Positions 1 through 64,000 of a stretch of DNA of 64,000 nt are shown piece after piece. The stretch is taken from sequence record PQ464595.1; one strand, 5' to 3'. A program made the translations under genes and the position numbers. Numbering within the stretch: the stretch's first letter is position 1; each line of letters starts with the position of its first letter. The notes under the pieces were generated by a model that ran no database searches, was not told where the DNA came from, and saw nothing but the letters and a program-made list of their open reading frames with translations.

Positions 1-1849
1 CGAAGTAAGATGTATTAGGGGAATAATATAACGCAATAGTACTTGATGATGGGGATAATCCTTGATTTGCCAATATACTATTTTTCAAATTAGTTAGTAC
101 TGTATTTGAAATAGATATTGTTTTATCGTACAATAGAGTTGTTGGATTTAACAAATAACCAGCAGTTAACACATTATTCTCTACAAAAACTGTTCCATAA
201 AATGTCACATTTCCTGAAGCATCACAATAAGATATTCCACCATATGTTGAATTTTCAGTAATAGTTGGTAATGGTAAACGAGTTGCTTGCGGAGCATAAC
301 CAGTACTTGTTCCAGTTGAAAATGAATTGTATGTATAGGTTCTTGTGGTTCCAATATCTGAAATACCTTTTGTATATTTTAAATATTTTGTTCCATTATA
401 TGTTCCAGTACCACTAAACATCATTCTACTAGAACTAATTGGAATTCCACCCATAAGCTGATCACCAACCCTTGAAGCATAATCAGCATATACATCATAT
501 TGAACAACACTATTAAATGTTCTTCCTCTGATATTATAAGCATTTACTTTATTAGTAAAGCTGTTTATTTTTCCTGAATATACTGGATAATAATCACTAA
601 GAATATATTTTTCACGAATATAATATTGTGTTCCATTTTCTGTAATATACCATGTTCCATTCAAGCTATCAGAAACTGATGAACCAACACCGAACATATT
701 AGTTGTTGTTATAGCATAGGGGTTATTCCATGTAATAGTACCAGAACTGCCACCAGTAGCAACTACTGGAGCACCAGTGGTTAAATCTGTCGTAAATGCT
801 TTTGTATTCACATTATAGAACACTCTAAAAGAAGGTCTTGTATCTACACGTGCTGTTATATTTCTAACGAACGAATTATTATTCATTGAAATAACTAAAT
901 TTGTTCCATCAAAAATACATTTTAAAATCCCATACATTGAATATGTATAACCAAAACATTGTGACAACGCAGCACTATATCGCAACCATGATTTAGAACC
1001 ACTTTCAATAGTACTTTGCCAAAGGTCAGCAATTCTAATATATCCTTGAGAACCTTGAGAATCTCCATATAGAGTATTACCTGTAATTCCTGTAATTTGT
1101 TCAACAGTACTTACAGTACCTGCTTGAATTTGAGAAACTGGAATTCTATATAATATGAATTGGAATGGATCATTTCCATTATAATATACACCAGTAGGAT
1201 TATTAATATCATATACTGATGAATACAATGAAACAATATACATATATGATCCAACAACAGTTGAATTCATAATATAATACGGAATTAAGTTACGATTAAT
1301 CGTTGCTGTTTGGTGATTAGCTTTTGCCATAGTTCCATTAGTTAGTACTAAATGAAGTATGTTATTACCAACTTCTTCATATGTTAGGCATGATTTGGCA
1401 TCACTATCATGAAATAAAATTTTCTTCCATGAACCTGTATAATACGAGTTTATAGTCGTAAATGGTTGCATTGAAGCACTTGGGTTATTGATATAAGTAT
1501 AGTAATAATTAATAGAACTACCATTCGTTCCTGGGCGAAGATATACTAATGACCCATCATCTTCAAGAAGTACGGGCATAGCTGAGTAATATGACAGTGT
1601 ACTACCGCCATCGAATGTTCCTGCTACACCAGGGGCGTTATTGTTTAACGCCCCATATTGTGAAAGAGGAAGTTGTTTTAAAATGTAATCCACATCGGAT
1701 TTGGACGGTAAAGGTAAATCTACGTGTCCAGTAGTATCAGCCAAGTAAACAGTACTATTACCTGTTGTTGTTATACTAGTACCGACATTTTTACTTTGTA
1801 CTGTTATATTTCCGGTGACATTCACATCACCTTTAATGACATATGCCAT
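1..1849 (-). CDS. Tail-fibre-like virion protein, partial (runs off the left edge); paralog of 1862..4555
   Basis: Not in the ORF track because it has no stop in the window. Hand translation from ATG at 1849 (SD AGGA): MAYVIKGDVNVTGNITVQSKNVG...LPLSQYG...EDDGSLVYLRPGTNGS, matching LPLSHYG...EDDGTLMILRPGTNGA of the neighbour. The frame is open at both ends checked. Confidence 0.8.
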   Translation of the reverse strand, partial: MAYVIKGDVNVTGNITVQSKNVGTSITTTGNSTVYLADTTGHVDLPLPSKSDVDYILKQLPLSQYGALNNNAPGVAGTFDGGSTLSYYSAMPVLLEDDGSLVYLRPGTNGSSINYYYTYINNPSASMQPFTTINSYYTGSWKKILFHDSDAKSCLTYEEVGNNILHLVLTNGTMAKANHQTATINRNLIPYYIMNSTVVGSYMYIVSLYSSVYDINNPTGVYYNGNDPFQFILYRIPVSQIQAGTVSTVEQITGITGNTLYGDSQGSQGYIRIADLWQSTIESGSKSWLRYSAALSQCFGYTYSMYGILKCIFDGTNLVISMNNNSFVRNITARVDTRPSFRVFYNVNTKAFTTDLTTGAPVVATGGSSGTITWNNPYAITTTNMFGVGSSVSDSLNGTWYITENGTQYYIREKYILSDYYPVYSGKINSFTNKVNAYNIRGRTFNSVVQYDVYADYASRVGDQLMGGIPISSSRMMFSGTGTYNGTKYLKYTKGISDIGTTRTYTYNSFSTGTSTGYAPQATRLPLPTITENSTYGGISYCDASGNVTFYGTVFVENNVLTAGYLLNPTTLLYDKTISISNTVLTNLKNSILANQGLSPSSSTIALYYSPNTSYF

Positions 1850-1861
1850 ATGTAAATCCTT

Positions 1862-11673: not shown

Positions 11674-12582
11674 TTATGAATATTTTCTAAGATATTCCTC
11701 AACAACATCTGCCTTTCCGAAGCCAGGTATCCCCGCATTCTTCTTAGACAATTGAACGAAGTCAAGGTTCAACAAATTTTCCAGTACTTCAGCATTATGT
11801 GCTTTAAAGAATATGTACTGACGTTTCGGGTTCAACTCGTCTTTACTTCGCACGATTTCAGAAAAATCATAGTACCCTTGACGGTGAACAGCAAAATCCC
11901 AATCGTAATCGAAATATTTCATTGCTGCTTCTGTTCTATTGTACTGGTACATTTCGAACATGTCAAGTTTAGTTTTAGGCTTTTCTACGATTCTTAGGTT
12001 TTCTTCTTCAAATTCACCGATTCCCCAAATTTGGAATGATGACCGAATACCATAAGATTCACCGACTATATTAAACGAGTCTTCTTCTAAGTCAATATCA
12101 TACAACAGTCTAGCTCGGCTGTCAAGCTGTTTTTGAGCAGAATATTTTCTGAACTGTACAGGGAGGATGAACCCCACGATAGTACTGTATTCAAAACACT
12201 TATTGATGAATTGAATAGCTAAATCTCCTTTCTTACCGAAAGGTGGATTTCCCAAAAACACCACGTCATTTTGTGGTAGATATTCTTCAATGTCGCCGTT
12301 GATGAAGTCCATTTGGATAATATTATCAGATTCAGGGAGAATGTCAAACCCTATTTTGTCTTCCTGAATAATATTAAGAAACGCTCCACCGCCAGCACTC
12401 GGCTCAATGATTGTGTACGGTTCTGACTTATACTTAGTACAGAACTTGACGAACTCTTGATAGCAGAATTCTGCTACTGAATCATTAGTGTAATATTTGT
12501 CAAGTTCTTTAGCTTCTTTTTTGTTCATTCCATCGTCCTTGTTGATTGCAAAAAGATATTTATAATCAACAATAAAGTCCAT
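11674..12582 (-). CDS. DNA adenine (N6) methyltransferase, gamma-type motif order
   Basis: DKYYT; IIEPSAGGGAF (motif I); FLGNPPFG (motif IV). Confidence 0.9.
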   Translation of the reverse strand: MDFIVDYKYLFAINKDDGMNKKEAKELDKYYTNDSVAEFCYQEFVKFCTKYKSEPYTIIEPSAGGGAFLNIIQEDKIGFDILPESDNIIQMDFINGDIEEYLPQNDVVFLGNPPFGKKGDLAIQFINKCFEYSTIVGFILPVQFRKYSAQKQLDSRARLLYDIDLEEDSFNIVGESYGIRSSFQIWGIGEFEEENLRIVEKPKTKLDMFEMYQYNRTEAAMKYFDYDWDFAVHRQGYYDFSEIVRSKDELNPKRQYIFFKAHNAEVLENLLNLDFVQLSKKNAGIPGFGKADVVEEYLRKYS

Positions 12583-12596: not shown

Positions 12597-12715
12597 AGAA
12601 ATACATCGCCCTGGAAGCTGGTAGTTCTAACGAGTAGGGATCTTCCAGTACTAGCATCGAAGCGTAAACGGTCTTACATCTGGATTTTGCCAGAAAGCAC
12701 GGCTTATGTATTTCT
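12597..12715 (-). ncRNA. Candidate multi-stem structured RNA upstream of the methyltransferase
   Basis: AGAAATACAT/ATGTATTTCT closing stem; internal CTGGAAG/CTTCCAG and TCTGG/CCAGA stems; GC-richer than flanks. Confidence 0.4.
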
Positions 12716-19795: not shown

Positions 19796-20700
19796 TATAG
19801 ACTCCGAATAAATTTAAATGCGTTATCCAAATAAGCAACGATATTCATCGCACCAATTGGATTAGCACTATGAACATGATATTCAAATGGTTTCCCAATC
19901 TGATTATCCATCATGTACTCGACTAAAAATTTGGCAAAGGTATAGCCAGTTTCTTCATCTTCATTTTCGGTATCACCTAAATCATGATCGAAAGAGATAA
20001 AGGACGGCAAACCATGTTCGTTGACGTAATAAACTGCTTCTTTATACGTTCGACAAACAACCATTTCTTCATTTGGATAGTACTTTTCAGCATCACGAAG
20101 ATCATCTAAGAACATCTTATATGAAGTTTCAGTTTTATCATCATCAACGTAGTCAATGAGAAGATTCTTTGAACGAACGAGCTTCATCAGTTCCATCTTA
20201 GCAGTACCAACAAAGTTTTGTTCTAAAAGAATGTTCCAACCACATTCAATCTTGTTACCCTTAAGGTAACGACACGTATGTAACAAGTTCACACCCGCAT
20301 TTTCAGCAGCGAAGTGTACACCATTATGTGCGTTATTACGAATGTCCAGAAGTTCTTCATAAGATACTTCTAAAGAAAACGCATGGTTGTGAGAACCGAT
20401 TACGGTATTTTTATAACTCACTAATGGCTGTAAACGATCCATCGGCAAATCATAATCAATTTCTTCTTTGGCTTCACGCATAACAGCGATTTCCAGACTC
20501 GGATCATCGTGTTCTACCATTCCACCTACTGCCCCCAGCAATCCATCGTAACGCAATTCTGACAGTACTAAACTCACGTTAGGAATGTCATTATACGGAT
20601 AGTTCGCATAAGGAGTACAGTTCTTCGCATAAATCCAGACGAACACACAATCATAACGTTCAGAACGTGTGCCGAATGGAATTTCTTGATACATAGCCAT
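19795..20700 (-). CDS. NUDT16-like Nudix hydrolase fused to a cyclic-phosphate-processing receiver-like domain
   Basis: LRYDGLLGAVGGMVE..SLEIAVMREAKEE Nudix box; C-terminal MFLDDLR...ISFDHDLG...TGY...HSANPIG. Confidence 0.8.
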   Translation of the reverse strand: MAMYQEIPFGTRSERYDCVFVWIYAKNCTPYANYPYNDIPNVSLVLSELRYDGLLGAVGGMVEHDDPSLEIAVMREAKEEIDYDLPMDRLQPLVSYKNTVIGSHNHAFSLEVSYEELLDIRNNAHNGVHFAAENAGVNLLHTCRYLKGNKIECGWNILLEQNFVGTAKMELMKLVRSKNLLIDYVDDDKTETSYKMFLDDLRDAEKYYPNEEMVVCRTYKEAVYYVNEHGLPSFISFDHDLGDTENEDEETGYTFAKFLVEYMMDNQIGKPFEYHVHSANPIGAMNIVAYLDNAFKFIRSL

Positions 20701-20702
20701 TT

Positions 20703-21494
20703 TTAGTAATCTTCTTCGTTATGTGACATGACTTCCATATGCTCATGGAGATACGCTTCAACCGTGTTGACTGCTTCGCTCATCGGCATATAAAGATTGT
20801 AATCAAACAGATCATCATTATCATGGGGTTCAGGATTCACGTTAATTACTAACGCAGGTGTTCCGATACCCATGTAAATGCTCCACGGAATAACTGTATC
20901 CGAAGAACCAATGACAACTACTACATCTTTAGACGTTAAGTTGTCGATGATTTCACCCATTTCACCATATACGGTTTTACGAACACCATCAGTGAAACGG
21001 AATACATCTCCGAACATTACGATGTTCGGTTTAGAAATAACCCCTGGTGTTGGAGTATGTTCAGTATAACCAATGTCACGAACTGAATAGTTCTGATCAT
21101 TAGTACTGTACGGTTCAACAACTTCAGTTAAGTAACCATGAACATGCATCGCTGTACCGCCAGCACGTTCAACAAGGTCATCAACATTCGCAGTGATGTG
21201 AATTACGTTTTCATCACCGTACATGCGTTCGATTTCGGCAATCATATGATGACCAATATTCGGTTCGTAGTTCTGTAAACCTACACGCATTTTGTTGAAG
21301 AAGTCGTGAATCATATGATAGTTCACGTTGAAGTTCGCAATATTACAAACCTGGTCAACATCTACCTGATCCCATAAGCCTTCTTCAGCGGCATCGCGGA
21401 ATGTATTAATACCAGACTCTTTAGATAGTCCAGCACCAGTACAGAAAACAATTCGTGGTGCACCTTTATTTTGGAGAAAGCGTTCGAGATTCAT
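20703..21494 (-). CDS. Sir2/sirtuin NAD-dependent deacylase
   Basis: GAGLSKESGINTFRD, ANVDDLVERAG, HVHG, KPNIVMFG, IGSS. Confidence 0.92.
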   Translation of the reverse strand: MNLERFLQNKGAPRIVFCTGAGLSKESGINTFRDAAEEGLWDQVDVDQVCNIANFNVNYHMIHDFFNKMRVGLQNYEPNIGHHMIAEIERMYGDENVIHITANVDDLVERAGGTAMHVHGYLTEVVEPYSTNDQNYSVRDIGYTEHTPTPGVISKPNIVMFGDVFRFTDGVRKTVYGEMGEIIDNLTSKDVVVVIGSSDTVIPWSIYMGIGTPALVINVNPEPHDNDDLFDYNLYMPMSEAVNTVEAYLHEHMEVMSHNEEDY

Positions 21495-21503
21495 TTATTG
21501 GCC

Positions 21504-21722
21504 TTATAAGTGAGAAAAATATAGTCGGCATCCACAGCTTGGACACTTCGGTTCTTTGATGTAATAGCCATCAGTCCCAGGAACTGTACGTGGAGCATCT
21601 TTGATTACATAAACATGGAAACAACGAGTACACGTAACTTTGTTATTCGCGGCTGGATGTTCATCAACCCATTTACCTGAGTACAGCTTTTTTAAGTGTG
21701 CTTCTAATTCTTCTTGAGTCAT
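21504..21722 (-). CDS. Small Zn-ribbon protein
   Basis: CTRC...CPSC. Confidence 0.7.
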   Translation of the reverse strand: MTQEELEAHLKKLYSGKWVDEHPAANNKVTCTRCFHVYVIKDAPRTVPGTDGYYIKEPKCPSCGCRLYFSHL

Positions 21723-21734
21723 GTTCGTTTTCCA

Positions 21735-22181
21735 TTAAACGGTGACTTTCAATTGCTCATTCCCAAAGGTTAATTCTTCGGGAAGAACCCCAAGATTAAA
21801 GACTAAATTGATCAAATCTTCATCTGTATCTTTTGGCTTATACACAATACTCATATGACATTTTAGATCATCGAATTTATGTTTAAACCCAGCATTGACT
21901 AATTCTTTATGGCGTTGTTGAATTTCGGGAGAATCTAGTAACAGTACTATAGCCTCCCATTCACCACCTGGCTTACCAAGTCGTTCAACACCAGTAATCT
22001 TTGCCGTATAAGTCTTATCATTCGAAAGTAAATCTATTTCAGGGTTACTTTCATCTTGCATCACTGTAACATGAAACTGCGAAGGTGTCAAGCAATCAAC
22101 ACCCGCTATTTTAAATAATTTTTGGATCTCTTTTGCCTGGTCAATATCCAGATCAAGACCCACGTATCCTTTTCCTGCCAT
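21735..22181 (-). CDS. acb1: 2H phosphoesterase, Acb1 / T4 gp57B-like anti-CBASS nuclease
   Basis: FHVTV and CHMSIVY 2H motifs; AIVLLLDSPEIQQRH..G.KHKFDD aligns with T4 gp57B from recall. Confidence 0.8.
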   Translation of the reverse strand: MAGKGYVGLDLDIDQAKEIQKLFKIAGVDCLTPSQFHVTVMQDESNPEIDLLSNDKTYTAKITGVERLGKPGGEWEAIVLLLDSPEIQQRHKELVNAGFKHKFDDLKCHMSIVYKPKDTDEDLINLVFNLGVLPEELTFGNEQLKVTV

Positions 22182-22190
22182 TATATATCC

Positions 22191-22388
22191 TTACATCGTT
22201 AAAATCAAGTATCCTAATACAAATAGGAACACACCTGCTATAACGAATAAGGCTACGCCAGAAAAGATATAAGCACCTTTCTTAAAGGTCATCGGAAGAC
22301 CCTTGAACTTCGATTTGTATTCCGAATAAGTTAGAAAACTAATAACGAAATACGCCAGTACTGATAGAAATAGCATGTATGTTAACAT
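22191..22388 (-). CDS. Small membrane protein
   Basis: Two hydrophobic segments. Confidence 0.65.
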   Translation of the reverse strand: MLTYMLFLSVLAYFVISFLTYSEYKSKFKGLPMTFKKGAYIFSGVALFVIAGVFLFVLGYLILTM

Positions 22389-22390
22389 AT

Positions 22391-23323
22391 TTAATATTCC
22401 CGTTCTTTGTCATCGCGGTACTTTTCAGCTAACTCAGCTACACTTTTATGAAAAGCAATGTGCGTATTGTAGTTAAATGATTGACCGCCAGTAATTGAAG
22501 GAACAACCTGAATATTCAATTGACGCAGATTAGTTTCAAATACCGACAACCCAATAATTTCTTCAGCATATACAAGGTAATCTTCGAGCTTCAACTCAAA
22601 TTTACGTTGTATGCCATGACGTTCAAGATGAACATCTTCATAAAATGGAAGTGGTGCTCGTCCAAATTCGATAACCATTTGAGCCATTGTTATTTCAGCC
22701 CAAATCTTTTCTTCCATTGTTTCTTCTTCTGGATTTTCAGCAATTACTTTTGCTTCATATTCAGCAATGAAAGTTTCATGATTAACAAAATAATCATAGT
22801 GTGGATGGTTACGAATTTCTTCAATCTGATCAGCAGTCTTTACAGTACCAGCATAATAAGTAAACTCTGAACTCAATGTTTCATAGATATGTTTATGTAC
22901 CGCATAAATGGTGACTGGTAATTGAATGAGATTTCCATCATAACCAGTGTAATTTACACTAATACCATCTTCCCAAATAATATCCTGAACATCGTCAAAT
23001 GTGAATGTCCAAGATTCAGGTTTATCCATATCTTCTTCCAGAAGAAAGTCTTCTTTATTAAGATTAGAACAAAGGAACTTGTTATACATTTCCCAAATTT
23101 CTTTGTTTCTTGTAGTTTCTTCTAACTTGTACTTACCATAATCATTATAGTAAGCAGCCATCGGAAGACCAACCAAATTATGGAAATGGTCGTTGTACAA
23201 GATTTTAGTACGGTTTATACCAGGAGATGCGATTGCTAACATTACAACAACTTCATCTTTTTCGCCGATAGGAAGTTGAGATACAGCACAAGATGTGTTA
23301 AAAGAACCCATTAATGTATCCAA
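22391..23323 (-). CDS. Hypothetical protein
   Basis: ORF track, 310 aa. Confidence 0.75.
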   Translation of the reverse strand: MDTLMGSFNTSCAVSQLPIGEKDEVVVMLAIASPGINRTKILYNDHFHNLVGLPMAAYYNDYGKYKLEETTRNKEIWEMYNKFLCSNLNKEDFLLEEDMDKPESWTFTFDDVQDIIWEDGISVNYTGYDGNLIQLPVTIYAVHKHIYETLSSEFTYYAGTVKTADQIEEIRNHPHYDYFVNHETFIAEYEAKVIAENPEEETMEEKIWAEITMAQMVIEFGRAPLPFYEDVHLERHGIQRKFELKLEDYLVYAEEIIGLSVFETNLRQLNIQVVPSITGGQSFNYNTHIAFHKSVAELAEKYRDDKEREY

Positions 23324-23547
23324 ATATAATAAATGGTTATAGCATAGTACGCACCGAAAGCAATAGTTGCCAGTACTGTTACTAAGTATAAACCGTATTG
23401 TGTTATTGTTTCTTTCCAGTTCCGAGGTCTAACGAATGCCATTAAACCACAACCAGCAAATAGATTCCAGAGTGCTGGAAATAGTACTGCTAAACCAAAT
23501 CCTACTGCCATAACTGTTAGGGCAACATCTTTGAGGAATTCTATCAT
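23311..23547 (-). CDS. Small membrane protein
   Basis: Two hydrophobic segments. Confidence 0.65.
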   Translation of the reverse strand: MIEFLKDVALTVMAVGFGLAVLFPALWNLFAGCGLMAFVRPRNWKETITQYGLYLVTVLATIAFGAYYAITIYYIWIH

Positions 23548-24044
23548 ACTAAAACCTCAATGTTATTATAATCGAATTTGATATATTTTGATTTTCCATT
23601 TTGAGAATATACCATATGTATATTATTTCCATCAGTATTAACTGATAGAACTCGGAAAGCACCAGATATTTTTTTACGAAGAGATTTAGATGGTTTAAAT
23701 TTCCAGGTTATACGCTGGGTATCACGATTAAATTCAATAACAGTACTGTACAAATTATTAGCTGCTAAGTTACCATGATTTTTACGTTCACTTTTTATAA
23801 AGCCAACAAAATCATGATATTCAAGATGTTGATTATGTAAAAACTCTTTTTTGAAGATTTTACTAGACCAGAATACACAATATGAAAGATGTGTATTACC
23901 AAAAATATCTTGGTATTTTTTCATCAATCCATCAACTTTTGGATTATCAAACCACATGTTTGCTAAAGCACAAGTGTTTCTTGAATAAAACTCTATAATA
24001 TTCATATGTGTTTCTCTCAATAAATTAAAAAGAAGGGAGAGCAA
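23544..24044 (-). CDS. Hypothetical protein (true start probably MNIIEF)
   Basis: ORF track. Confidence 0.65.
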   Translation of the reverse strand: MLSLLFNLLRETHMNIIEFYSRNTCALANMWFDNPKVDGLMKKYQDIFGNTHLSYCVFWSSKIFKKEFLHNQHLEYHDFVGFIKSERKNHGNLAANNLYSTVIEFNRDTQRITWKFKPSKSLRKKISGAFRVLSVNTDGNNIHMVYSQNGKSKYIKFDYNNIEVLV

Positions 24045-24055
24045 TTGCTCTCCCT
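24027..24055 (-). terminator. Terminator after NAMPT
   Basis: AGGGAGAGC/GCTCTCCCT stem + U-tract. Confidence 0.8.
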
Positions 24056-24060
24056 AAGTA

Positions 24061-25626: not shown

Positions 25627-25635
25627 TTATTTGGT

Positions 25636-26154: not shown

Positions 26155-26169
26155 AACATCCTCTCAATT

Positions 26170-26194
26170 AAAATGGAGTACCTTTCAGTACTCC
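26170..26194 (-). terminator. Terminator after NadM-Nudix
   Basis: GGAGTAC/GTACTCC stem + U-tract. Confidence 0.7.
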
Positions 26195-26201
26195 AAAACT
26201 C

Positions 26202-37501: not shown

Positions 37502-37502
37502 A

Positions 37503-38402: not shown

Positions 38403-38417
38403 AATAATCACCAAAGA

Positions 38418-39056: not shown

Positions 39057-39104
39057 AATTATCTCCAGTTTAAATTAAAATGGGGAATAAACTTCCCCAA
39101 TAGA

Positions 39105-39347: not shown

Positions 39348-39356
39348 TGTAGTGCC

Positions 39357-39850: not shown

Positions 39851-40191
39851 TCAACATTAGCATCACTACTGCGATACTTGCTAGTACTTTGATCTTCATG
39901 CCACCGCTGTTCACAACATTTACACGTAATAACGTACCAGTATGAATCGTCGGACTTACACCAGTTTCCAGTATCGGATTCTGGTTTTACAGTGACATAT
40001 GGGTGTTCACAATTCGATTGGAACTCAAATAGGTCAGAGTTTGCTTTGCCAGCAATTTCACGTAAACGTAAGAACTCCATACGTTTTTCAGCAAAATCTT
40101 GGTCTTTAGCATCTTTAAGCTCCTGGTATTCCACGGCATCTTCTTTAGAAGTGAATTCAGTACCATCAGGAGTTACATAGATTTTAGTCAT
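39835..40191 (-). CDS. Hypothetical protein with Cys/His cluster
   Basis: CEHP...C...CKCC. Confidence 0.65.
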   Translation of the reverse strand: MTKIYVTPDGTEFTSKEDAVEYQELKDAKDQDFAEKRMEFLRLREIAGKANSDLFEFQSNCEHPYVTVKPESDTGNWCKSDDSYWYVITCKCCEQRWHEDQSTSKYRSSDANVEWIGR

Positions 40192-42299: not shown

Positions 42300-42965
42300 A
42301 TGGATTATCAAAAAATTTACAATAACTTAATGCTAAAACGTAAAACAGTACTGTTAGAAAATCAGTATACTGAAAGTCATCATATTGTACCTAAATGCTT
42401 AGGTGGTGGCAATGAAAAAGATAATCTGGTTAATTTAACACCAGAAGAACACTTTCTAGCACATCAGTTGTTGGTTAAGATTTATCCAGAACATAAAGGA
42501 TTAAAATATGCTTTATACCTAATGACTATATCACCATCAGGTAAAAGAAATAATAATAAACTCTATGGTTGGATTAAGCGAGACTATCAATCAAATAGAG
42601 CAACATCATCTGGATTTACGGGAAGAACACATAAACCGGAAACTATAGCTAAAATGAAAGAAGCTCGTGCTAAACAGGTGATCACTGAAGAAACTAAACA
42701 AAAAATTAGCAGTACTAAGACTGGTGTCAAATTAACACAAGAAGCTAAAGATTCATTAAATGAAAAACGTCGAAATCATCCAACTTGGTTAGAGTCACAT
42801 CGAAATAAATCAGTTTCTGAAGAAGCTAAAGCTAAGATTAGTGCGGCTAATAATGGTAGAATTTTTCCAGAAAAGACGTGTCCACATTGCTTAAAAAATG
42901 GAGCAGGTCCGAATATGACCCGCTACCATTTTGATAATTGTAAGTTTAAAAATCTCCAGGGTTAA
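42300..42965 (+). mobile_element. Free-standing HNH homing endonuclease with NUMOD3-like repeats
   Basis: ESHHIVPKCLGGGNEKDNLVNLTPEEHFLAH; HKPETIAKMK/TEETKQKIS repeats; C-terminal CPHC; opposite strand; CATAAATA at 42270. Confidence 0.9.
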
Positions 42966-44554: not shown

Positions 44555-44586
44555 TACTCCTTGTGGTAGGCTATTTAGAAGTACTG

Positions 44587-45735
44587 TTAGACTACAAAAT
44601 CCTTCAGTACTTCTTTCATGTATTTCAGCATCACAACCTTGTAATCAACAGGACGTTGTTGATACAGGCTGAACGCAATACCTGGCTTACCGAGTTCGTT
44701 AGGCAGAACCTTCTGAACCTGTAATGCGTATTCCTTACGTTCAAGATGCTTGTTCTGATTGTAAAACGCTTCACTTTCAGTGACTAAAGCATTATAGCAC
44801 GAAAATACAAGCTGTTCCATTTTTTCAATCTTTTTCATTGCGTATACGTCAGTACTGAACATCTGTTTCAGGTCATCTGACGCACCCTGTACTACTGTTT
44901 CGTACAAGCGTGAATCGACGTTGATGCCGTCTTTGGTAAAGTGTAAAGCACAGTACCAGTCAGTTTTGATCTTACACATACGACCATCTTTCAGGATCAG
45001 TACGTAACCTTCAATGTCTTGCATTGAACGACACGCTTCGATACTTTCGAACAGTGTTTCTTTCATAGGGAATGTTGAATCAACTTCACCATACTTAGCA
45101 AACACGGAACGTTCATACAGCAATGGTGAAATCTGTTTCAGATCTTCACCGACAATAAGTTCACCTGAGTTGCGGTTACGCAGGTTCAGCACTGTTAAAC
45201 CGTCTTCTTGATACGGAAGAACAATACGGAATTCAGGTGAAGTATATTCGAGGTTCACAGTATAACCAGTAGCTTCTACGAAATGAATCTCGTTCAGAAG
45301 TTCTTTGTCTGCGTGAATCATAGCAGTACTGTTAATCGCATGGTCAGAATTCAAAGACGCATGAGACTTAGTACGGATCTGGAAATCCACATCCATAAAG
45401 GTACTGATGATAGAACCATCCAGTTTATCCATTACTACGGAGATTTCAGTACTTAAAGTACTACGATCAAACATAGTGAATGGGTTCTCGTATGCGTTGA
45501 AGAACTTTTGCGGTGTACGAGAGGCACACGCCAAATAGTTACCTTCTTCGTCAACACGGAACATTGAACCGCGACATTCCAGTGCGTTAGGCTCCAGAAA
45601 ATCAGAATAACTCGCCAGGCGATATGAGAAAATACGGAAGATACCACCACCAACAGAGGTGAAGTCTTTCCACATAAACGCTTCGTTCTTAGCGGTTAAA
45701 GCCATCAGATCGTTAAAAATAGTTTCAGTACTCAT
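44587..45735 (-). CDS. rnlA: RNA ligase 1 (T4 Rnl1-like)
   Basis: FSYRLASYSDF, ECRG, KFFN, DKLDGSII, NLEYTSP, IEGYV, KIKTDWY. Confidence 0.95.
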   Translation of the reverse strand: MSTETIFNDLMALTAKNEAFMWKDFTSVGGGIFRIFSYRLASYSDFLEPNALECRGSMFRVDEEGNYLACASRTPQKFFNAYENPFTMFDRSTLSTEISVVMDKLDGSIISTFMDVDFQIRTKSHASLNSDHAINSTAMIHADKELLNEIHFVEATGYTVNLEYTSPEFRIVLPYQEDGLTVLNLRNRNSGELIVGEDLKQISPLLYERSVFAKYGEVDSTFPMKETLFESIEACRSMQDIEGYVLILKDGRMCKIKTDWYCALHFTKDGINVDSRLYETVVQGASDDLKQMFSTDVYAMKKIEKMEQLVFSCYNALVTESEAFYNQNKHLERKEYALQVQKVLPNELGKPGIAFSLYQQRPVDYKVVMLKYMKEVLKDFVV

Positions 45736-45766
45736 TGGTAAATCCTCATTAATTAAGTAAGGGAAC

Positions 45767-45795
45767 AGTCTACACTAAAGCAGCCTGTCTGTCAA
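45767..45795 (-). promoter_or_regulatory. Sigma70-like promoter TTGACA-17-TAGACT
   Basis: Read directly from sequence, upstream of rnlA. Confidence 0.75.
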
Positions 45796-45796
45796 C

Positions 45797-46102
45797 TCAA
45801 TATTCGCAAGTGTCGTCAATATTTTTCTGAAGGTCATACTTGTACATGCGTACTTTAAGCATCAGATCAGCAGGATAATGATAACATATTCCGTTATCAT
45901 GCCGCAAGTAAACCATATCAGAATCACGACCGTAACGGTTATAATTTGTTCGTAGTAAATGTTGCTGAGGTTTTTCATGAGTAATTGTGTACAGTACTTC
46001 ACCGGATGGTTTCTGAACAACGGTTCCTTCTTCAATTCTTCCAGCCGGAACAAGTATTGTAACATAATCAATATTAGTTAAATCAATCATTTGTCGTCCC
46101 AC
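45797..46102 (-). CDS. Hypothetical protein, paralog of the next gene
   Basis: GTVVQKPSGEVLYTI. Confidence 0.65.
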   Translation of the reverse strand: MGRQMIDLTNIDYVTILVPAGRIEEGTVVQKPSGEVLYTITHEKPQQHLLRTNYNRYGRDSDMVYLRHDNGICYHYPADLMLKVRMYKYDLQKNIDDTCEY

Positions 46103-50994: not shown

Positions 50995-51540
50995 TTACTC
51001 AGTGTATGGTTGAACTACAAACCCAAGACTTTTCAGTACTTCAATCTTTTCTTCAGTAAGATTGTTATCATAGATAACTAGCATACTTGGGAATGGAGCA
51101 CCGGATTTTTTATGTGAACCATCTTCTGTCCACGAAGGTAAGCTCCGGTTATCGAATTTTAAACGACCTTTCACAAAACAAATTGCGGTTGCTGCTGTTG
51201 CTACGAACTTGTGGAAGTAAGTAGTATCAGTACGTGCTGGTGGTAGAGCTACGATAGTAGTACCGTTCTCTGTAAATTCCTCATGCATCTTTTTGAACCA
51301 TTTACTGATTTCTCGACCGTAAGGAGGATTACACCAAACAGTTTCGCCTTCCCATGAATGTGCTAGGCCGTCTGTTTCAGGTGTGTAGTACTTCTCACAT
51401 TTTGCTGTATCATCCATAGCAGCAGGATCTAGTGTGAAGTTCCATACAGCATTTAGTTTCTCATAAAAATCATCTGGAGTATCCCAGGTATTTGATGCTG
51501 AACTAAAGTGCACAGATTGTGTATTCTTTTCTTCTTCCAT
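50995..51540 (-). CDS. Phage DNA N6-adenine methyltransferase (lambdoid Dam-like)
   Basis: WDTPDDFY, FTLDPAA, VWCNPPYG, PARTDT, GRLKF. Confidence 0.9.
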   Translation of the reverse strand: MEEEKNTQSVHFSSASNTWDTPDDFYEKLNAVWNFTLDPAAMDDTAKCEKYYTPETDGLAHSWEGETVWCNPPYGREISKWFKKMHEEFTENGTTIVALPPARTDTTYFHKFVATAATAICFVKGRLKFDNRSLPSWTEDGSHKKSGAPFPSMLVIYDNNLTEEKIEVLKSLGFVVQPYTE

Positions 51541-58562: not shown

Positions 58563-58953
58563 TTAGTATATCTTCCGCAATATCCATATGCATTGTGCTA
58601 TGGTCTAAAATTTTAATATTTGTTGTGTCAAAAAGACAGAATGATGGCATAATATCTGGTTCATATTCGTTGATATATTTAATAGAATCGAAATCGACAT
58701 TATCGCGTAAAAGTATATTGTGTAATTTACGCCAACCATCATCTGAACCTTCATCAAAGGATTCATACGGGTTAGTACTGATAAGCTCACACTGATGTAT
58801 GTGAATACTGTCAATGTAATGGCCTTTTCCACGCCCTTCATATAACTTACGCAGAGCACATTCAATAGCACTCTGGTATCCACCTACATGTAAACCACCA
58901 TAAGGAATATAGAATTCCTCAATCTTTACAGTACTAGCATGAAATACAATCAT
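58519..58953 (-). CDS. Putative ADP-ribosyltransferase-fold (ART-PolyVal-like) protein
   Basis: VFHAST...GLHVG...FDSIKYINEYE...SFCLFDTTNIKI. Confidence 0.45.
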   Translation of the reverse strand: MIVFHASTVKIEEFYIPYGGLHVGGYQSAIECALRKLYEGRGKGHYIDSIHIHQCELISTNPYESFDEGSDDGWRKLHNILLRDNVDFDSIKYINEYEPDIMPSFCLFDTTNIKILDHSTMHMDIAEDILNGKFTFEGYQGHYY

Positions 58954-59546
58954 ATTACCCTGAACCCTTCTAGTGTTTTTAAATTGAATAATTCCATATT
59001 GGAAATATTAATCATAATATCTTCTCGTAATAAATTAGGAAGAACTAGATTATAGTACCAGTTAACTTCTTGCTGGAATAATTCGTATGGAATAATGTTC
59101 TGTACTGTTAGCTGTTGGAAGAAATATTCTTCACCATATTCATCAAAGACTTCATTCGCATCAGAACTACTATTCAGTCCAATGTAACGCTTCTCCCAAT
59201 TCTTTGAATGATCTCCAACAACAATACATAAACTATCATTGTATCTACCATTGTACCACTGAAACTCACTGTCTGACAAGGAAAATTCAGCCCAAACCGC
59301 GTGTTCTCGTTTAATACTTTCTATATGAAATACTGGATATTCTGTATCCGTTTCATCATACACAGCAAAGTAATTAGGTCGCATTACAACATTCTGACCT
59401 GTTCTTCTGAAGTTAATGAATTCGAAATTGTAACTTTCTTCAGTATCTACCAAATGTGAATACTTTTCTTCCATCTGGAGATACAACTGATATACATAAC
59501 GAATCATGTAAAACGTTTCAGAAGTACTGAAATCTTCACGCTTCAT
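58950..59546 (-). CDS. Orphan, FQxLT family
   Basis: GEEYFFQQLTVQNIIP. Confidence 0.75.
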   Translation of the reverse strand: MKREDFSTSETFYMIRYVYQLYLQMEEKYSHLVDTEESYNFEFINFRRTGQNVVMRPNYFAVYDETDTEYPVFHIESIKREHAVWAEFSLSDSEFQWYNGRYNDSLCIVVGDHSKNWEKRYIGLNSSSDANEVFDEYGEEYFFQQLTVQNIIPYELFQQEVNWYYNLVLPNLLREDIMINISNMELFNLKTLEGFRVI

Positions 59547-60117
59547 CTAAGTACCTTTTTATTTGTTCTAAGAACGTACTCCAGTACTGTTCAGTGTAGG
59601 TAAAATTGAAACTCATTTTAAATGGAAGTTCTCTGATAGTATTGTGAATATCATCATATTCTTCCATGTCTTCAAAGTATGGAATATCGTGTAAAGTTAA
59701 TAACTGGAACATCCATTCCTCAGTAATCTGTTCTGGTAATATAGCAACTACATTACCTCCAGTACTCATAAAGTACGCATTACTCTCAGGAATGTTATTC
59801 ATAGAAATTTGATTATGTATCTTGGATATATTATTGAAAAACCAGGCCACATCATAGACAACACTTAATGAACATAGTGTTTGTACTGAGGCGGCAACAT
59901 GACAAATAGAACTTCTATTTAATGTGAAATTTATTTGCTTTTGATGGTGGGCTGGATTGTCAGATTCCTTAACACTAAAAGAATGTTGTATCTGATAGCC
60001 AGTACTCATATAATCATGATCAATATTAGTATCACTCGTTTTAAGAACGAATGGTTTATCTCTGAGCTTAGGTAGCTCCTTTACGATTTCATGTAATGAT
60101 TTTAGTACTTCTAACAT
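59536..60117 (-). CDS. Orphan, FQxLT family
   Basis: TEEWMFQLLTLHDIP. Confidence 0.75.
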   Translation of the reverse strand: MLEVLKSLHEIVKELPKLRDKPFVLKTSDTNIDHDYMSTGYQIQHSFSVKESDNPAHHQKQINFTLNRSSICHVAASVQTLCSLSVVYDVAWFFNNISKIHNQISMNNIPESNAYFMSTGGNVVAILPEQITEEWMFQLLTLHDIPYFEDMEEYDDIHNTIRELPFKMSFNFTYTEQYWSTFLEQIKRYLDEA

Positions 60118-60120
60118 AAA

Positions 60121-60729
60121 TCATAATCCCGCTGTTCTTCTTATTGCGTATTCTACTATCTTCAAAGAATCCTTTACCTTTTTCATCGAAGTACTATCAT
60201 TCAGCACAGTACTGAATTGATTAATACCATCTGACCCAGGTTCAGTAATTAATTGTAGAACACATTGATGGTCTTTCTTAATGTCCACGAAGTACTGATA
60301 TAATTCTTCTGAACTTAAATCTAACAAGGTTAAATTCTGGAAGTACTGTTCTTCTGGAATAGGATGATGAAGTACTTTAAGACGTTCACGGTCTTGTACC
60401 CATATCTTATTAGTATCTTGTACTTTACCAAAATTGATTCCAGTACCTTCTGATGAACCAAAGAATTGACAACAATCCCAACTATCATGCTCGAAGTCCA
60501 TGCTGTATTCGAACACGAAGTCCTTTCCGATCATCTTTAACTGTATCCAATATGAAGTACAAATTAATCTATAGGATAAGTCACCATGACTGCCACCCAT
60601 ATCAGTAGTACTGTAAGAACCTTTCTTTACTGTATCAAGTACTAAATTGTCTACAAGCTGAATTAAAACATTCTGTTCTTCATAAAACTGCTTCAATAAC
60701 TCACAATTTCTCACACGCTTCCCTCGCAC
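60121..60729 (-). CDS. Orphan, FQxLT family
   Basis: PEEQYFQNLTLLDLS. Confidence 0.75.
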   Translation of the reverse strand: MRGKRVRNCELLKQFYEEQNVLIQLVDNLVLDTVKKGSYSTTDMGGSHGDLSYRLICTSYWIQLKMIGKDFVFEYSMDFEHDSWDCCQFFGSSEGTGINFGKVQDTNKIWVQDRERLKVLHHPIPEEQYFQNLTLLDLSSEELYQYFVDIKKDHQCVLQLITEPGSDGINQFSTVLNDSTSMKKVKDSLKIVEYAIRRTAGL

Positions 60730-60820
60730 CGTTCCCGCCGCCCACTATACCTTGATCATAATAATGAGAAGCGGAAATTTTTTTAGGTTATTTTTTGAAC
60801 AGCTTTTTTAAGGTGAAGAC

Positions 60821-61519
60821 TTATTTATCTCCGTGAAAATCATCAAAATGTTCACGTTCTACCTTTGCCGCCCATTCTTCATCACGAGCATCAATCCGGT
60901 CTTTCTCAACCTGTATCAATCCATCCAAAACTTCCTGTACTGATTGTACCATACTTTCTTTGTTCGTTTCATCTATTTGATTCTCCGCAATCCATCCTGC
61001 GTTGAACGAATAAGCAATAAATTCTGAATTACCTTCCATTACATATTGTCCTGTACGCATGAACAAATCCATATTAATCTCTAACGGTACTGGAAACCTC
61101 GTTAACTCCTGAAACACTTGTTCCTCTTGTAATGGGTACTGTAACGAACATTGTTCAGATTTTTGTAAACCAATTGTGTGACTTATTAACAATGCGGTAC
61201 TATCTTTCCGGTACGTACTGAATCCTATGTTCTCACAATTCGAATCTAACCGGAAATGTGATGAACGCAAATTCTGTACTACTGTACCTGTATCGTAAAA
61301 ACCCGTACAATGAATTATCTCATAATCCGTGTCTTCACCTAACGCATAAGCATTAAATGTCATCCTGTCATCACGCACTCGCACTAAACGACAACGAACA
61401 CTACTGTTCGTGAATGCAATATCATTCATTACACCCGGCTCAAATGATTGAAGCATTTTTTTCAATACATCTTTGAACGCATCTTGTACGTAAAGGTTCT
61501 TAAACGTTGTCTGTACCAT
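60821..61519 (-). CDS. Orphan, FQxLT family (start MVQTTF)
   Basis: QEEQVFQELTRFPVP; SD AGGAG. Confidence 0.75.
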   Translation of the reverse strand: MVQTTFKNLYVQDAFKDVLKKMLQSFEPGVMNDIAFTNSSVRCRLVRVRDDRMTFNAYALGEDTDYEIIHCTGFYDTGTVVQNLRSSHFRLDSNCENIGFSTYRKDSTALLISHTIGLQKSEQCSLQYPLQEEQVFQELTRFPVPLEINMDLFMRTGQYVMEGNSEFIAYSFNAGWIAENQIDETNKESMVQSVQEVLDGLIQVEKDRIDARDEEWAAKVEREHFDDFHGDK

Positions 61520-62141
61520 TTCGCCGCTCCTGTATCTCTGCCTCAATAACTTCTATTAACTCTAATATCTCTTCTTCAGATAAAATATCCAGTACTCGAT
61601 AATCTAACTTCATCGTACAAAAGAAACCTTTTTGATCCCTCTCGTACTCAGTCATGTTGTGTGGATATACCTGTAAAGCAATTAACTGCGTCAGGACTTC
61701 ATTCATTGTATAACGTGTGAGGTTCTGAAAGATTATCGGATCAATTATATCTGATTCAAGACTTGTACCAGCCTGAAGTACTGGATATGTCTGAGCCATC
61801 TTATCTAATCTAGATAAACTTGCACGACGTATTCCACGACTCTGCCACCAAGTATAAGGCCATCGTGTAGGAAATATCGCTCTTACATCATCCCATATCT
61901 CAGGTTGGTATGGTTCGGTATTCGCATCGAAGTATAAAAATTCCGTACAACCCTCAAATGCTTTATCAAGCATCTCTATGTATGCTATGCTTGAATTGAC
62001 TGATGTACGATAATTTTTACCTGTACTTAACTGCTTAACCAGAAATGTAAATCCTAATCCTTCATCTAACCTGTACATACAATACAGGTCATCCAGTACT
62101 TTCATTAGTCGTACAATTTCATCAAACTTTGGAGGCTTCAT
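61500..62141 (-). CDS. Orphan, FQxLT family
   Basis: IDPIIFQNLTRYTM. Confidence 0.75.
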   Translation of the reverse strand: MKPPKFDEIVRLMKVLDDLYCMYRLDEGLGFTFLVKQLSTGKNYRTSVNSSIAYIEMLDKAFEGCTEFLYFDANTEPYQPEIWDDVRAIFPTRWPYTWWQSRGIRRASLSRLDKMAQTYPVLQAGTSLESDIIDPIIFQNLTRYTMNEVLTQLIALQVYPHNMTEYERDQKGFFCTMKLDYRVLDILSEEEILELIEVIEAEIQERRNGTDNV

Positions 62142-62754
62142 GTTCTAATCCTATTACAGTACTGTAATACAAATCTTTTAACGCAGCTTCACGTTCTTCA
62201 CCTAATCCAACATATGGTGCTAAGTTCACCACGTACTTCTGAATACCAACATCTTCATTGATAAGAACCTGATTCAGTAGTATAGCAGTTAAATCTACCA
62301 TACCATACTTAGTCATAAGCATGAATTCCATAACTTCTAATTCTTCTGGATCATTTTCATGAAGCATCTCAAATACCTTAGTAGGATGATTACCCTTCAT
62401 GAAGTAATAAGGGTTTTCTGCTTTTGGTAGAGTGTTAAGACGACGACCATCATAATTACTGATATATTGTGGCTGCTGTTCATGAGTAGTCATCGAAAAC
62501 ATTTGCTCACGATTGCTTTTATAAAGCCGAACACTATGAAAACTCAAATGAGCATTATCATAAGAAACATGGATATTACATAGTACCGTAGCACCAAACG
62601 CTTCGTAGTACTTAGATGTTGTATATTCAAAAGTACTTCCATATCCAGCTACCTTCATAGCCTCAATACGAGGAAACATTTTTAAGTACAGTTCACGTAA
62701 ATGAACAATCAGTGGATAGTGAAAATTAAGCGTCTGTAACATCATATTCTCCAT
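62122..62754 (-). CDS. Orphan, divergent FQxLT family member
   Basis: EELEVMEFMLMTKYG. Confidence 0.7.
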   Translation of the reverse strand: MENMMLQTLNFHYPLIVHLRELYLKMFPRIEAMKVAGYGSTFEYTTSKYYEAFGATVLCNIHVSYDNAHLSFHSVRLYKSNREQMFSMTTHEQQPQYISNYDGRRLNTLPKAENPYYFMKGNHPTKVFEMLHENDPEELEVMEFMLMTKYGMVDLTAILLNQVLINEDVGIQKYVVNLAPYVGLGEEREAALKDLYYSTVIGLEHEASKV

Positions 62755-63328
62755 TTAAGTACGGAACTAGTAAATCCAGTACTTGCTGTACATCTAAACT
62801 GTAATCTTTCAGTACCATCCCAATCGTTACTGCTGGGTGATCATTCTTACTGAGTACATTAATCATCTTCTCACACTGTTCATCCCATAGTGCGTAATCT
62901 TCTTCAGGTAACGTTTCCTGTACTGTCATACGCTGGAAGAAATATTCTTCAGGAAAAGGAAAAGAGATGAAAGTATGCTGCTGACCATTCCTACCATTCG
63001 TAGGATCGTACAGTGCGTAGTACCTTGGATGTGATTCTTTCCAGAACGCAATACGTATTCCATCAGTATTAAGGTCAAAAGTACTTAAGTATTGAGTACT
63101 CGTGTTAAAGGATATGCTGAATATAATGTCCTCTTGCCAACGACCACCGTTACCAAATAACTTTAAGATGTGCTGGTACTCAGTACCATCACTCCACCGT
63201 GCTACTGAAGCACTGAATTCATCAGTTAACTGAACAAAGGCTTTATCTTGAAAAGGTATCTTAGGTACAAGGTGTTCCCACGTTCCAAGAAACATTTCTT
63301 TTAGTTTTTCGTATTTGTCGTAGTCCAT
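62726..63328 (-). CDS. Orphan, FQxLT family
   Basis: PEEYFFQRMTVQETLPEEDY. Confidence 0.75.
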   Translation of the reverse strand: MDYDKYEKLKEMFLGTWEHLVPKIPFQDKAFVQLTDEFSASVARWSDGTEYQHILKLFGNGGRWQEDIIFSISFNTSTQYLSTFDLNTDGIRIAFWKESHPRYYALYDPTNGRNGQQHTFISFPFPEEYFFQRMTVQETLPEEDYALWDEQCEKMINVLSKNDHPAVTIGMVLKDYSLDVQQVLDLLVPYLNGEYDVTDA

Positions 63329-63329
63329 A

Positions 63330-63935
63330 TTAGATGTATCCTAACTCCGATGCTTTTTGAATAATCTGTTCTACAACACCTTTATATGACTCTAAATCAA
63401 TAGGTGCTTCAACATGCTTCCCGTAAATCATGAAAGTACGGTACTTCTCATTCTGTAAGTACTGAATGCTTTCTTTTAACGTTTCGAACATGCCGAGGCC
63501 GTTAGGTGAGTAGTACCCTGTATCAGAACCCTGGAGTACCACCATTCCCTGACCGACGAATGAATAACCTTCCAGTACTTCGTAATCGTATTCAGTGCGA
63601 AGCATACCAATACGAACGTGTGGATCAAAGAAGTCGCCGATTGTGATTGCGGAAGAATTGGCCTGAACAGTATATGTCACGGTAAGACCTATAGTACCGC
63701 CAAGTTCTAAAAGAGTATGTTCGACCTGATCGCTAAGAATGCTAGTACGACCACCCTGAAGTTTATCTTCGATTTGTAGAAGTAACTGAATCAGTGTTTC
63801 AGAGATTTTTAGGAATCGTGTGTAATAATCTTCGCCGAGGTTAATGAGGGATAAACCGTTATGAGCATTTTGTTTAATACGATTCAGGCGAGAATTCCAT
63901 TCACGATTAGCTAAGCCGCAAGCAGTGCTTTCCAT
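63330..63935 (-). CDS. Hypothetical protein
   Basis: ORF track; SD AAGGA. Confidence 0.7.
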   Translation of the reverse strand: MESTACGLANREWNSRLNRIKQNAHNGLSLINLGEDYYTRFLKISETLIQLLLQIEDKLQGGRTSILSDQVEHTLLELGGTIGLTVTYTVQANSSAITIGDFFDPHVRIGMLRTEYDYEVLEGYSFVGQGMVVLQGSDTGYYSPNGLGMFETLKESIQYLQNEKYRTFMIYGKHVEAPIDLESYKGVVEQIIQKASELGYI

Positions 63936-64000
63936 GTTATTTCCTTAATGTGGGATTAATTGTATAGGGTAATACTTATACCCCGTTTATAAGGGTGCTA

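Follow-up and report, generated by a model that had tools for sequence, protein, structure and literature searches.

The genome of Erwinia phage Kaldavass (PQ464595.1, 366,556 bp) carries the palindrome AGTACT about ten times more often than expected, and our analysis of a 64,000-nt stretch of this genome (record positions 302557–366556, called the window here and numbered from 1), together with related and unrelated phages, shows that the word is maintained by selection. Window bases 20000–40000 are 100% identical to this record. Kaldavass, a jumbo myovirus (genus Mimasvirus), belongs to the RaK2/GAP32/CBB/121Q group, which is distantly related to T4 (PMC11780129). The excess occurs in all reading frames and between genes, recurs in every clade member sampled and is accompanied by a complete absence of GCGC; an unrelated temperate siphovirus lineage has arrived at both features independently. 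We give a probability of roughly 0.5 to the reading that AGTACT, frequently as part of CAGTACTG, is under positive selection as a word of double-stranded DNA and that its copies form an array for a symmetric DNA-binding factor, a function that we infer from the palindromic shape of the site.

AGTACT outnumbers every other hexamer in Kaldavass

The window contains 206 AGTACT sites (3.2 per kb), more than of any other hexamer. Dinucleotide-preserving shuffles of the window yielded 18.7 ± 4.0 sites with a maximum of 30, and Markov models predicted 21 (order 0) and 19 (order 1), corresponding to a 10.8-fold excess. The words ranked next by excess, CAGTAC and GTACTG, both overlap AGTACT. Genome-scale counts, which cover 364 kb (record positions 2557–366556), gave 1101 sites against 117 expected, and AGTACT is the commonest hexamer there too. 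We conclude that the excess is real and genome-wide. A preliminary description of the window had put the over-representation at about tenfold throughout, in agreement with these figures, and its sub-counts were exact (20 sites in 60001–64000, which is among the densest stretches of the window, 8 in 44580–46000 and 7 in 1–1800). Its density of 4–5 per kb holds for the dense stretches it had counted and not for the window as a whole, and its GC content of near 35% is to be replaced by the computed 37.4%.

The density of sites varies along the chromosome. It peaks at 45–60 per 10 kb in a block of small unknown genes (record 2.5–32 kb) and is lowest, at 16–27 per 10 kb, where the structural and replication genes lie (150–290 kb). 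The widest gaps in the genome measure ~2 kb and coincide with genes under strong constraint, among them that of the major head protein, in which there is no site.

The excess is independent of protein coding

Coding sequence makes up 95.8% of the window and the genes lie almost all on the minus strand. The genic AGTACT sites are found in each of the three frames, with 96 in frame 0 (AGT-ACT, Ser-Thr), 31 in frame 1 (xAG-TAC-Txx) and 72 in frame 2 (xxA-GTA-CTx). When synonymous codons were shuffled within the window genes, which keeps the proteins and the codon usage of each gene, 51 ± 6 sites were obtained compared to the 199 observed (24, 11 and 15 in frames 0, 1 and 2). Since this shuffle preserves both proteins and codon usage, its expectation already holds part of the AGTACT signal. 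A dicodon-preserving model, that is, a first-order Markov chain over codons, keeps the frame-0 sites by construction; in the two frames that run across three codons, it predicted 19.4 and 36.8 sites where 31 and 72 were observed. Codon-pair bias in the window is strongest for AGT-ACT (96 vs 12.7 expected), GTA-CTG (51 vs 7.8) and CAG-TAC (28 vs 6.3), which are one DNA word viewed in three frames.

Sites also occur between genes, where 7 are present in 2717 bases against 0.91 expected (Poisson P = 4.5e-5). Of the intergenic sites named in the preliminary description, those at 12647, 52225 and 52542 are indeed intergenic, while that at 52105 falls inside a doubtful annotated open reading frame of 30 codons. 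Its placement of a site within a terminator stem at 26187 also stands, the site forming part of the 5' arm of a minus-strand hairpin that resembles a terminator, as does its mention of AGTACT in the HNH gene, which has two copies (Table 1).

The pressure on the DNA has altered protein composition. Ser-Thr dipeptides number 142 in the window coding sequences compared to 83 expected (1.7-fold), the reverse dipeptide Thr-Ser being at 85 vs 83, and AGT-ACT encodes 96 of the 142 (68%). Similarly, Val-Leu is found 151 times against 109 expected (1.4-fold) and Leu-Val 112 times against 109. A translation-level effect, in which a codon, codon-pair or tRNA-driven taste for AGT-ACT and related codons would generate the excess, could draw on the fact that AGT-ACT has the strongest codon-pair bias and that Kaldavass carries its own tRNA-Ser and tRNA-Thr genes. 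However, the excess is present in three frames and in intergenic DNA, outlasts both the synonymous and the dicodon-preserving models and is found again in the prophage lineage described below, and we regard this explanation as scarcely tenable. Indeed, the frame-1, frame-2 and intergenic excess effectively refutes a codon, codon-pair or dicodon cause, in line with the earlier view that codon bias is insufficient.

The word is a short perfect palindrome and is evenly spaced

Pooling of 986 AGTACT sites from eleven clade members revealed flanks that are almost without information beyond ±1. At position −1, G is found at 7% rather than 18% and C is favoured, with the mirror image at +1; the shortage of G at −1 is probably due in part to the rarity of G at third codon positions. 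The commonest octamer in Kaldavass is the palindrome CAGTACTG, with 188 copies. Because the information is confined to a perfect palindrome of 6–8 bp, a reader of this word would be expected to be a symmetric dimer. A longer repeat or a dispersed miniature mobile element is ruled out, as the copies share no flank information beyond ±1.

Words resembling AGTACT are mildly enriched. Those that match at five of the six positions are 1.6–3.5-fold above expectation, and GTAC in non-palindromic contexts is 1.4–1.9-fold enriched. The ten NGTACN contexts that are spared by restriction avoidance are all above expectation, at 1.1–3.5-fold besides AGTACT, and GGTACC and CGTACG have zero copies. By contrast to the 9–15-fold enrichment of AGTACT, TGTACA stands at 1.09-fold in Kaldavass and 0.49 in the prophage. 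None of the single-mismatch neighbours of AGTACT is strongly depleted (minimum 0.55), which rules out a drain of one precursor word of the kind that very-short-patch repair would cause.

The spacing of the sites in the window has a coefficient of variation (CV) of 0.78, compared to 0.99 ± 0.07 for random placement (P < 0.0005), and every 1-kb bin contains a site, although 2.6 empty bins would be expected. The CV was below 1 at 12 of 12 jumbo-phage loci. For the other eleven most frequent hexamers, it ranged from 0.84 to 1.32; the three words below 1 overlap AGTACT and the eight unrelated words are at 1.05–1.32. These data show that in the jumbo phages selection keeps AGTACT more even than chance. 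Within genes, the positions of the sites are uniform, with no excess at starts or ends, which rules out a per-gene regulatory element. Neighbouring sites display only the codon period; the absence of a 10–11 bp phasing rules out cooperative binding along one helical face.

Selection keeps AGTACT sites and replaces lost ones

The sites are well conserved between relatives. Compared with XbC2 (90% identity), 86% of the AGTACT sites are intact, the figure for all hexamers being 60%; the corresponding values are 65% and 27% for CBB, and 56% and 25% for GAP32. TTCTTC, a common Glu-Glu codon pair, is conserved nearly as well as AGTACT, and for that reason identical codons were compared inside and outside the sites. 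Within AGTACT, GTA keeps its synonymous third base in 98%, 91% and 84% of cases, against 80%, 53% and 52% elsewhere (XbC2, CBB and GAP32; P = 4e-4, 1e-5 and 7e-4, respectively). The third bases of AGT, ACT and TAC point in the same direction, being better kept inside the sites.

With CBB and GAP32 as outgroups, site turnover could be followed in Kaldavass and XbC2; in each of them, sites were gained about seven times and lost two to eight times. Several of the new sites arose by two to four base changes, and the density was held meanwhile. Thus, selection keeps existing AGTACT sites and replaces those that are lost, and it acts on the DNA word itself, in all frames and in intergenic DNA, at a cost in codon choice and amino-acid sequence.

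The trait is general in the clade sampled and missing from T4 and ValKK3

The clade members sampled, whose DNA ligases are at least 61% identical, number 25: XbC2, CBB, GAP32, 18 IMG/VR loci, RaK2, ph0011 (Asteriusvirus), Hallingskeid and one further contig. All 25 are AGTACT-enriched, 6–14-fold or higher. In syntenic regions of 43–50 kb, there are 160 sites in XbC2 (13.6 expected), 178 in CBB (12.5 expected) and 129 in GAP32 (10.1 expected), and the 18 IMG/VR loci, with ligases 61–99% identical, are each 6–14-fold enriched. A DNA ligase search of the phage collection returned 59 records of at least 60% identity, and the farther matches that were sampled are at ~33% or below. T4 (4 sites vs 3.4 expected) and ValKK3 of the genus Schizotequatrovirus (4 vs 3.7), both beyond this divide, are without enrichment. 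As all clade members sampled are enriched and these two are not, the trait is old and, among T4 relatives, clade-specific.

Host DNA was represented by 30 kb of E. coli K-12 and a 2.4-kb Leclercia flank. The E. coli sample has two AGTACT (0.07 per kb), ~45 times fewer per kb than the phage. Our full-text literature searches found no paper that ties AGTACT, CAGTACTG or GTAC over-representation to these phages, and the papers on CBB, XbC2 and Kaldavass do not mention the AGTACT excess.

The AGTACT excess travels with complete absence of GCGC

GCGC does not occur in the window (53 expected) or in the 364 kb of Kaldavass (365 expected), and its count is zero in every clade member sampled. Moreover, 24 of the 64 palindromic hexamers are absent from the 364 kb, with expectations of 10–56 each, and GATATC occurs 6 times against 104 expected. 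This extreme pressure against palindromes makes the tenfold excess of a single one more pointed. The excess is not a by-product of palindrome avoidance or of GCGC loss, because the words expected and lost (GCGC 365, GGTACC 38 and CGTACG 42) are too few to feed ~1000 extra AGTACT and ~1800 extra GTAC.

IMG/VR was scanned for three AGTACT within ~80 bp. Among the matches listed were clade members and contigs of ~30 kb that encode a lambda-like tape measure, tail-tip J, portal and a protease-capsid fusion. The capsid gene of these contigs identifies prophages in Leclercia tamurae (95%), another Leclercia, Phytobacter diazotrophicus and Yersinia pekkanenii. These prophages contain 49–106 AGTACT per 21.8 kb, an 11–16-fold enrichment, and no GCGC against 17–39 expected; the matching IMG/VR contigs are likewise enriched in AGTACT with zero GCGC. 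In L. tamurae (JAMHKS010000078.1), the signature stops sharply beside a serine-recombinase gene, at ~position 18300 of the examined locus: AGTACT stands at ~4.7 per kb within the prophage, where GCGC is missing, and the DNA beyond it has no AGTACT and 8–11 GCGC per kb. The prophage sites are again distributed over the frames (52, 15 and 41), with a total of 108 compared to 25 ± 4 in the synonymous shuffle, and CAGTACTG accounts for 44% of the AGTACT sites in this lineage. More remote members of this prophage family, found in Atlantibacter and with capsids 31–32% identical, are the reverse, with 0–1 AGTACT per 21.7 kb, depleted GTAC (22 vs 55 expected) and normal GCGC.

The tetranucleotide correlation between the jumbo phage and the prophages is 0.78–0.87 and falls to 0.54–0.65 when GCGC and GTAC are removed, which is no higher than that between Kaldavass and T4. 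This drop rules out a general genome signature common to both groups and indicates that the shared traits are the AGTACT and GCGC features, plus broadly similar avoided palindromes (r = 0.4–0.7). Searches of all prophage open reading frames against Kaldavass with tblastn and phmmer, from which small or divergent proteins may escape, found in common only a lysozyme and a patchily distributed gamma-class methylase. Judged by these comparisons, an unrelated temperate siphovirus lineage of the Enterobacterales has converged on both features.

A link of AGTACT to the encoded methyltransferases is not supported

Four methylases were classified and none suits AGTACT, a scan of the full proteome for endonuclease families not having been made. 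The preliminary description had linked the sites to the two adenine methyltransferases of the window, a link to which their distribution, the identity of the Dam enzyme and the published methylome are all contrary. Within the clade, tblastn finds the methylase at 11674–12582 in Kaldavass and XbC2 only; elsewhere, its homologues are <60% identical and scattered over rV5-like and phAPEC8-like phages, Pseudomonas KIL, Atu_ph07 and a Helicobacter phage. More distant homologues are seen in ph0011 and in a Leclercia prophage. CBB and GAP32 lack the gene at the syntenic place, yet are equally AGTACT-enriched, and rV5 has a homologue and a single AGTACT against 4.2 expected. The patchy distribution, the enriched CBB and GAP32 without the gene and the non-enriched rV5 together rule out this 302-residue methylase as the cause. 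Equal enrichment in relatives lacking both enzymes, which the preliminary description had named as evidence against its idea, is thus seen for this one; the Dam at 50995–51540 is clade-conserved (syntenic homologues CBB_72 and XbC2_56), so the comparison cannot be extended to it. The Dam enzyme probably writes the published GATC methylation.

Nanopore sequencing of native and whole-genome-amplified DNA, with motifs found by manual inspection, identified modified GATC and CCWGG in both Kaldavass and Hallingskeid, with TGCAT as a further modified motif of Kaldavass; AGTACT is not among the modified motifs of either phage (PMC11780129). Kaldavass has 1101 AGTACT sites compared to 349 TGCAT/ATGCA and 444 CCWGG, and Hallingskeid is equally AGTACT-rich. 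The three published motifs are matched by three enzymes (Dam-like, Dcm-like and YhdJ/CcrM-like), which leaves AGTACT unmodified; its modification in virion DNA is not reported in this published analysis, the raw signal of which we did not inspect. CDS0509, outside the window, may write the TGCAT modification of Kaldavass. E. coli YhdJ methylates ATGCAT. TGCA is fourfold depleted in Kaldavass (368 vs 1482 expected), and the Yersinia prophage is TGCA-poor too (17 vs 96 expected).

It could still be argued that AGTACT is a methyltransferase-linked iterated palindrome, targeted by a phage adenine or N4-cytosine methylase, with sites that are selected or repair-generated as proposed for HIP1. Type II enzymes typically recognise a discrete 6-bp palindrome whose flanks carry no information, the gamma-class N6-adenine methylase is the sole non-lysis gene family common to Kaldavass and the AGTACT-rich prophages, and this enzyme has no assigned motif, the three published motifs being explained by three others. 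However, most clade members lack it, CBB and GAP32 with their equal enrichment among them; the rV5 homologue is not accompanied by AGTACT enrichment; the nanopore study detected rarer motifs in Kaldavass and Hallingskeid and did not report AGTACT, which outnumbers every other hexamer; and the draining of a precursor word that very-short-patch repair would bring about is not seen. We consider this explanation rather improbable. A more economical reading of the shared methylase is that GTAC-rich genomes acquire protection against GTAC- or AGTACT-specific restriction.

A symmetric DNA-binding factor as candidate reader

The preliminary description had offered, besides the methyltransferases, a DNA-binding, packaging or recombination protein as the user of the sites. 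The methyltransferase alternative is not supported, and a protein that binds the sites, proposed on the form of the motif, is the best available reading. The dense array would be read by a symmetric, probably dimeric, sequence-specific factor of restriction-enzyme-like precision, which would distinguish the phage chromosome from AGTACT-poor host DNA. Discrimination between phage and host DNA is a plausible purpose given the ~45-fold difference in AGTACT density in the small host sample. Binding might serve for nuclease protection, for marking the DNA for replication, transcription or compaction, or for something else. None of the genes that the prophage lineage has in common with the jumbo phages is a plausible reader, which makes a host factor shared across the Enterobacterales, or one supplied in trans, more likely than a clade-specific phage protein.

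Several points weigh against this reading. Binding is deduced from the shape of the motif, and a methyltransferase would also recognise a flank-free six-base palindrome, the methylase at 11674–12582 being without an assigned motif. The mild enrichment of NGTACN words would equally suit a physical property of the GTAC core or decayed former sites. The conservation of TTCTTC near the AGTACT level means that hexamer-level conservation alone is not decisive. In the prophage lineage, spacing is not under-dispersed (CV ~1), even spacing being found only in the jumbo phages, and the host densities come from two small samples (30 kb from E. coli, 2.4 kb next to the Leclercia prophage).

Among physical alternatives, DNA mechanics has to be taken most seriously: AGTACT hinges at even intervals would make it easier to bend the DNA for packaging, or for type II topoisomerases to capture it, by way of indirect readout and with no need of a reader of their own. 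The TA step within GTAC is the single most deformable one and lies at the centre of the gyrase G-segment (PMC13284261), Kaldavass encodes its own topoisomerase II, the jumbo-phage sites are evenly spaced and the ten NGTACN contexts all exceed expectation. However, TGTACA, which is at least as flexible, is barely enriched in Kaldavass and is depleted in the prophage, so the outer A/T pair must be read base-specifically. Moreover, the 10–11 bp phasing is missing, T4 and Schizotequatrovirus package DNA equally densely without the trait, and a lambda-like siphovirus has it; we think this explanation unlikely. A bias of mutation or repair, in which context-specific polymerase error, mismatch repair or gene conversion keeps making functionless AGTACT, would accommodate the recent gains with two to four base changes at once and the enrichment of five-of-six near-cognate words, and would have to be strong enough to change protein sequence, as is seen here. 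Against it stand the lack of a strongly depleted single-mismatch neighbour, the under-dispersed spacing, which such a bias would not be expected to produce and which other frequent words, being clustered, do not share, and the occurrence of the trait in two phage groups with unrelated replication machinery together with its stop exactly at the prophage boundary. This bias, too, appears quite improbable to us.

Other proposals concern what the word would be for. One conjecture, to which we assign a small chance, is that self and host are told apart by sequence content: a GCGC-directed nuclease could shred the host chromosome (6–10 GCGC per kb in the host samples) and spare the GCGC-free phage, the evenly spaced AGTACT array would be read as "self" by a dimeric factor, and the siphoviruses, copying both features, would survive or exploit the same machinery, provided by a superinfecting jumbo phage or by a common Enterobacterales host system. 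An RNA-level signal, with AGUACU in long polycistronic transcripts read by a ribonuclease or RNA-binding protein, must be considered since nearly all of the window is transcribed from one strand, so that the intergenic excess does not exclude RNA. But AGTACT and CAGTACTG are perfect palindromes with symmetric flanks, which suits a dimer on double-stranded DNA and is unnecessary for RNA, and the sites are uniform in position within genes; an RNA signal is therefore very unlikely. SlmA, the host nucleoid-occlusion factor, is present in the hosts of the two groups alike and might be drawn to AGTACT, blocking cell division in infected cells. Its site GTGAGTACTCAC has a central AGTACT, and binding requires G and T as the first two bases (PMC3020112). 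The phage lacks the full site, its half-site flanks are at 18 vs 20 and 20 vs 29 expected, and G is depleted at −1 of AGTACT; the flanks do not show the outer G and T, and the pattern of SlmA sites (G and T at positions 1 and 2, A and G at positions 4 and 5 of the 12-bp palindrome) is not reproduced. We judge SlmA recruitment extremely unlikely.

Comparison with known systems

The nearest known counterpart of the AGTACT array is HIP1 (GCGATCGC) of cyanobacteria. HIP1 is linked to methyltransferases. Both are short perfect palindromes found about once per 300–350 bp (310–330 bp for AGTACT), occur in all frames and between genes and are conserved beyond neutral expectation. HIP1 differs in residing in cellular genomes and in containing methylase targets (CGATCG and GATC). 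AGTACT is phage-borne and, per the published data, unmodified in virion DNA, and no cognate methylase tracks the trait. The earlier suggestion of a HIP1-like phage system is therefore borne out as to density and frame-independence and not as to the methyltransferase link: AGTACT shares with HIP1 the genome-wide excess, the independence of frame and the conservation between relatives, and it departs, on the published nanopore analysis, in not being a methylated target of a resident methylase. AGTACT would be a variant of HIP1 that is carried by phages, spelled differently and unmethylated.

Chi (GCTGGTGG), uptake sequences and KOPS are likewise over-represented chromosome-wide words that tell own from foreign DNA. 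However, these are asymmetric, strand-oriented and read single-stranded or directionally, and AGTACT is palindromic. Chi itself is ~9-fold enriched in Kaldavass, with 11 and 20 copies on the two strands (31 vs 3.6 expected), so AGTACT does not stand in for it; a Chi-like site or Chi substitute is ruled out by the palindromic form and by this separate enrichment. In the Leclercia prophages, Chi is present in one orientation only. SlmA sites share the central hexamer and the host order and differ in that the outer G/T is not enriched and no full site exists in the phage. The nicks of T5-like and Pseudomonas tf-like phages also involve a phage-specific short word that recurs along the genome, but at a dozen or so strand-specific sites per genome, compared to >1000 palindromic AGTACT sites. 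Strand-specific coverage drops were reported only for phage Rembedalsseter (PMC11780129). The avoidance of restriction sites by phages is found in Kaldavass too, in extreme form; AGTACT runs opposite to it by an order of magnitude, though ScaI-type and GTAC-specific enzymes exist.

Phages are known to avoid short palindromes, and this clade, which includes the largest enterobacterial phages, reverses the rule for one word. The array points to an undescribed interaction of a DNA-reading factor with phage chromosomes, which could bear on how phages with unmodified DNA separate self from host, and it provides a small, tractable system for the question of why highly iterated palindromes exist. Several phages of the clade are being considered as biocontrol or therapeutic agents. 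In practice, ScaI and RsaI will fragment these genomes finely and HhaI-type enzymes will leave them intact, and "AGTACT-rich, GCGC-free" is a cheap metagenome marker for such phages and prophages.

Features of the window and of the methylase set

The coordinates of the features are collected in Table 1.

Table 1. Sites and genes considered in the analysis (window positions unless marked as record positions)
Feature	Position	Strand	Remarks
Dispersed AGTACT array	1..64000	none	206 sites; mean spacing 310 bp; largest gap 1175 bp
Intergenic AGTACT sites	12647..12652; also 26187, 44580, 52225, 52542, 56841, 57419	none	
Gamma-class N6-adenine DNA methyltransferase (302 aa)	11674..12582	minus	Recorded as "hypothetical"; motifs EPSAGGG then NPPF; no Pfam match
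Terminator-like hairpin	26174..26195	minus	AGTACT at 26187-26192 in the 5' arm
HNH/NUMOD3 homing-endonuclease gene	42300..42965	plus	Two AGTACT (42347, 42711); absent at the syntenic place in XbC2
Phage Dam-type N6-adenine methyltransferase	50995..51540	minus	PF05869 5e-28; TIGR01712 3e-22, 78.8 bits, under the curated cut-off of 97
Gene with the highest AGTACT density in the window	60121..60714	minus	7 sites, 11.8 per kb
CDS0509, YhdJ/CcrM-like N6/N4 methylase	record 294920-295780		Outside the window; best match PRK11524, 51.6 bits vs cut-off 292
CDS0246, Dcm-like C5 methylase			Outside the window

The HNH/NUMOD3 gene is among the few plus-strand genes of the window and adjoins a polynucleotide kinase gene; its absence from XbC2 suggests a recent insertion. 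On the minus strand, eight adjacent open reading frames of 193–241 codons at 58950–63935 look like a tandem paralogue family.

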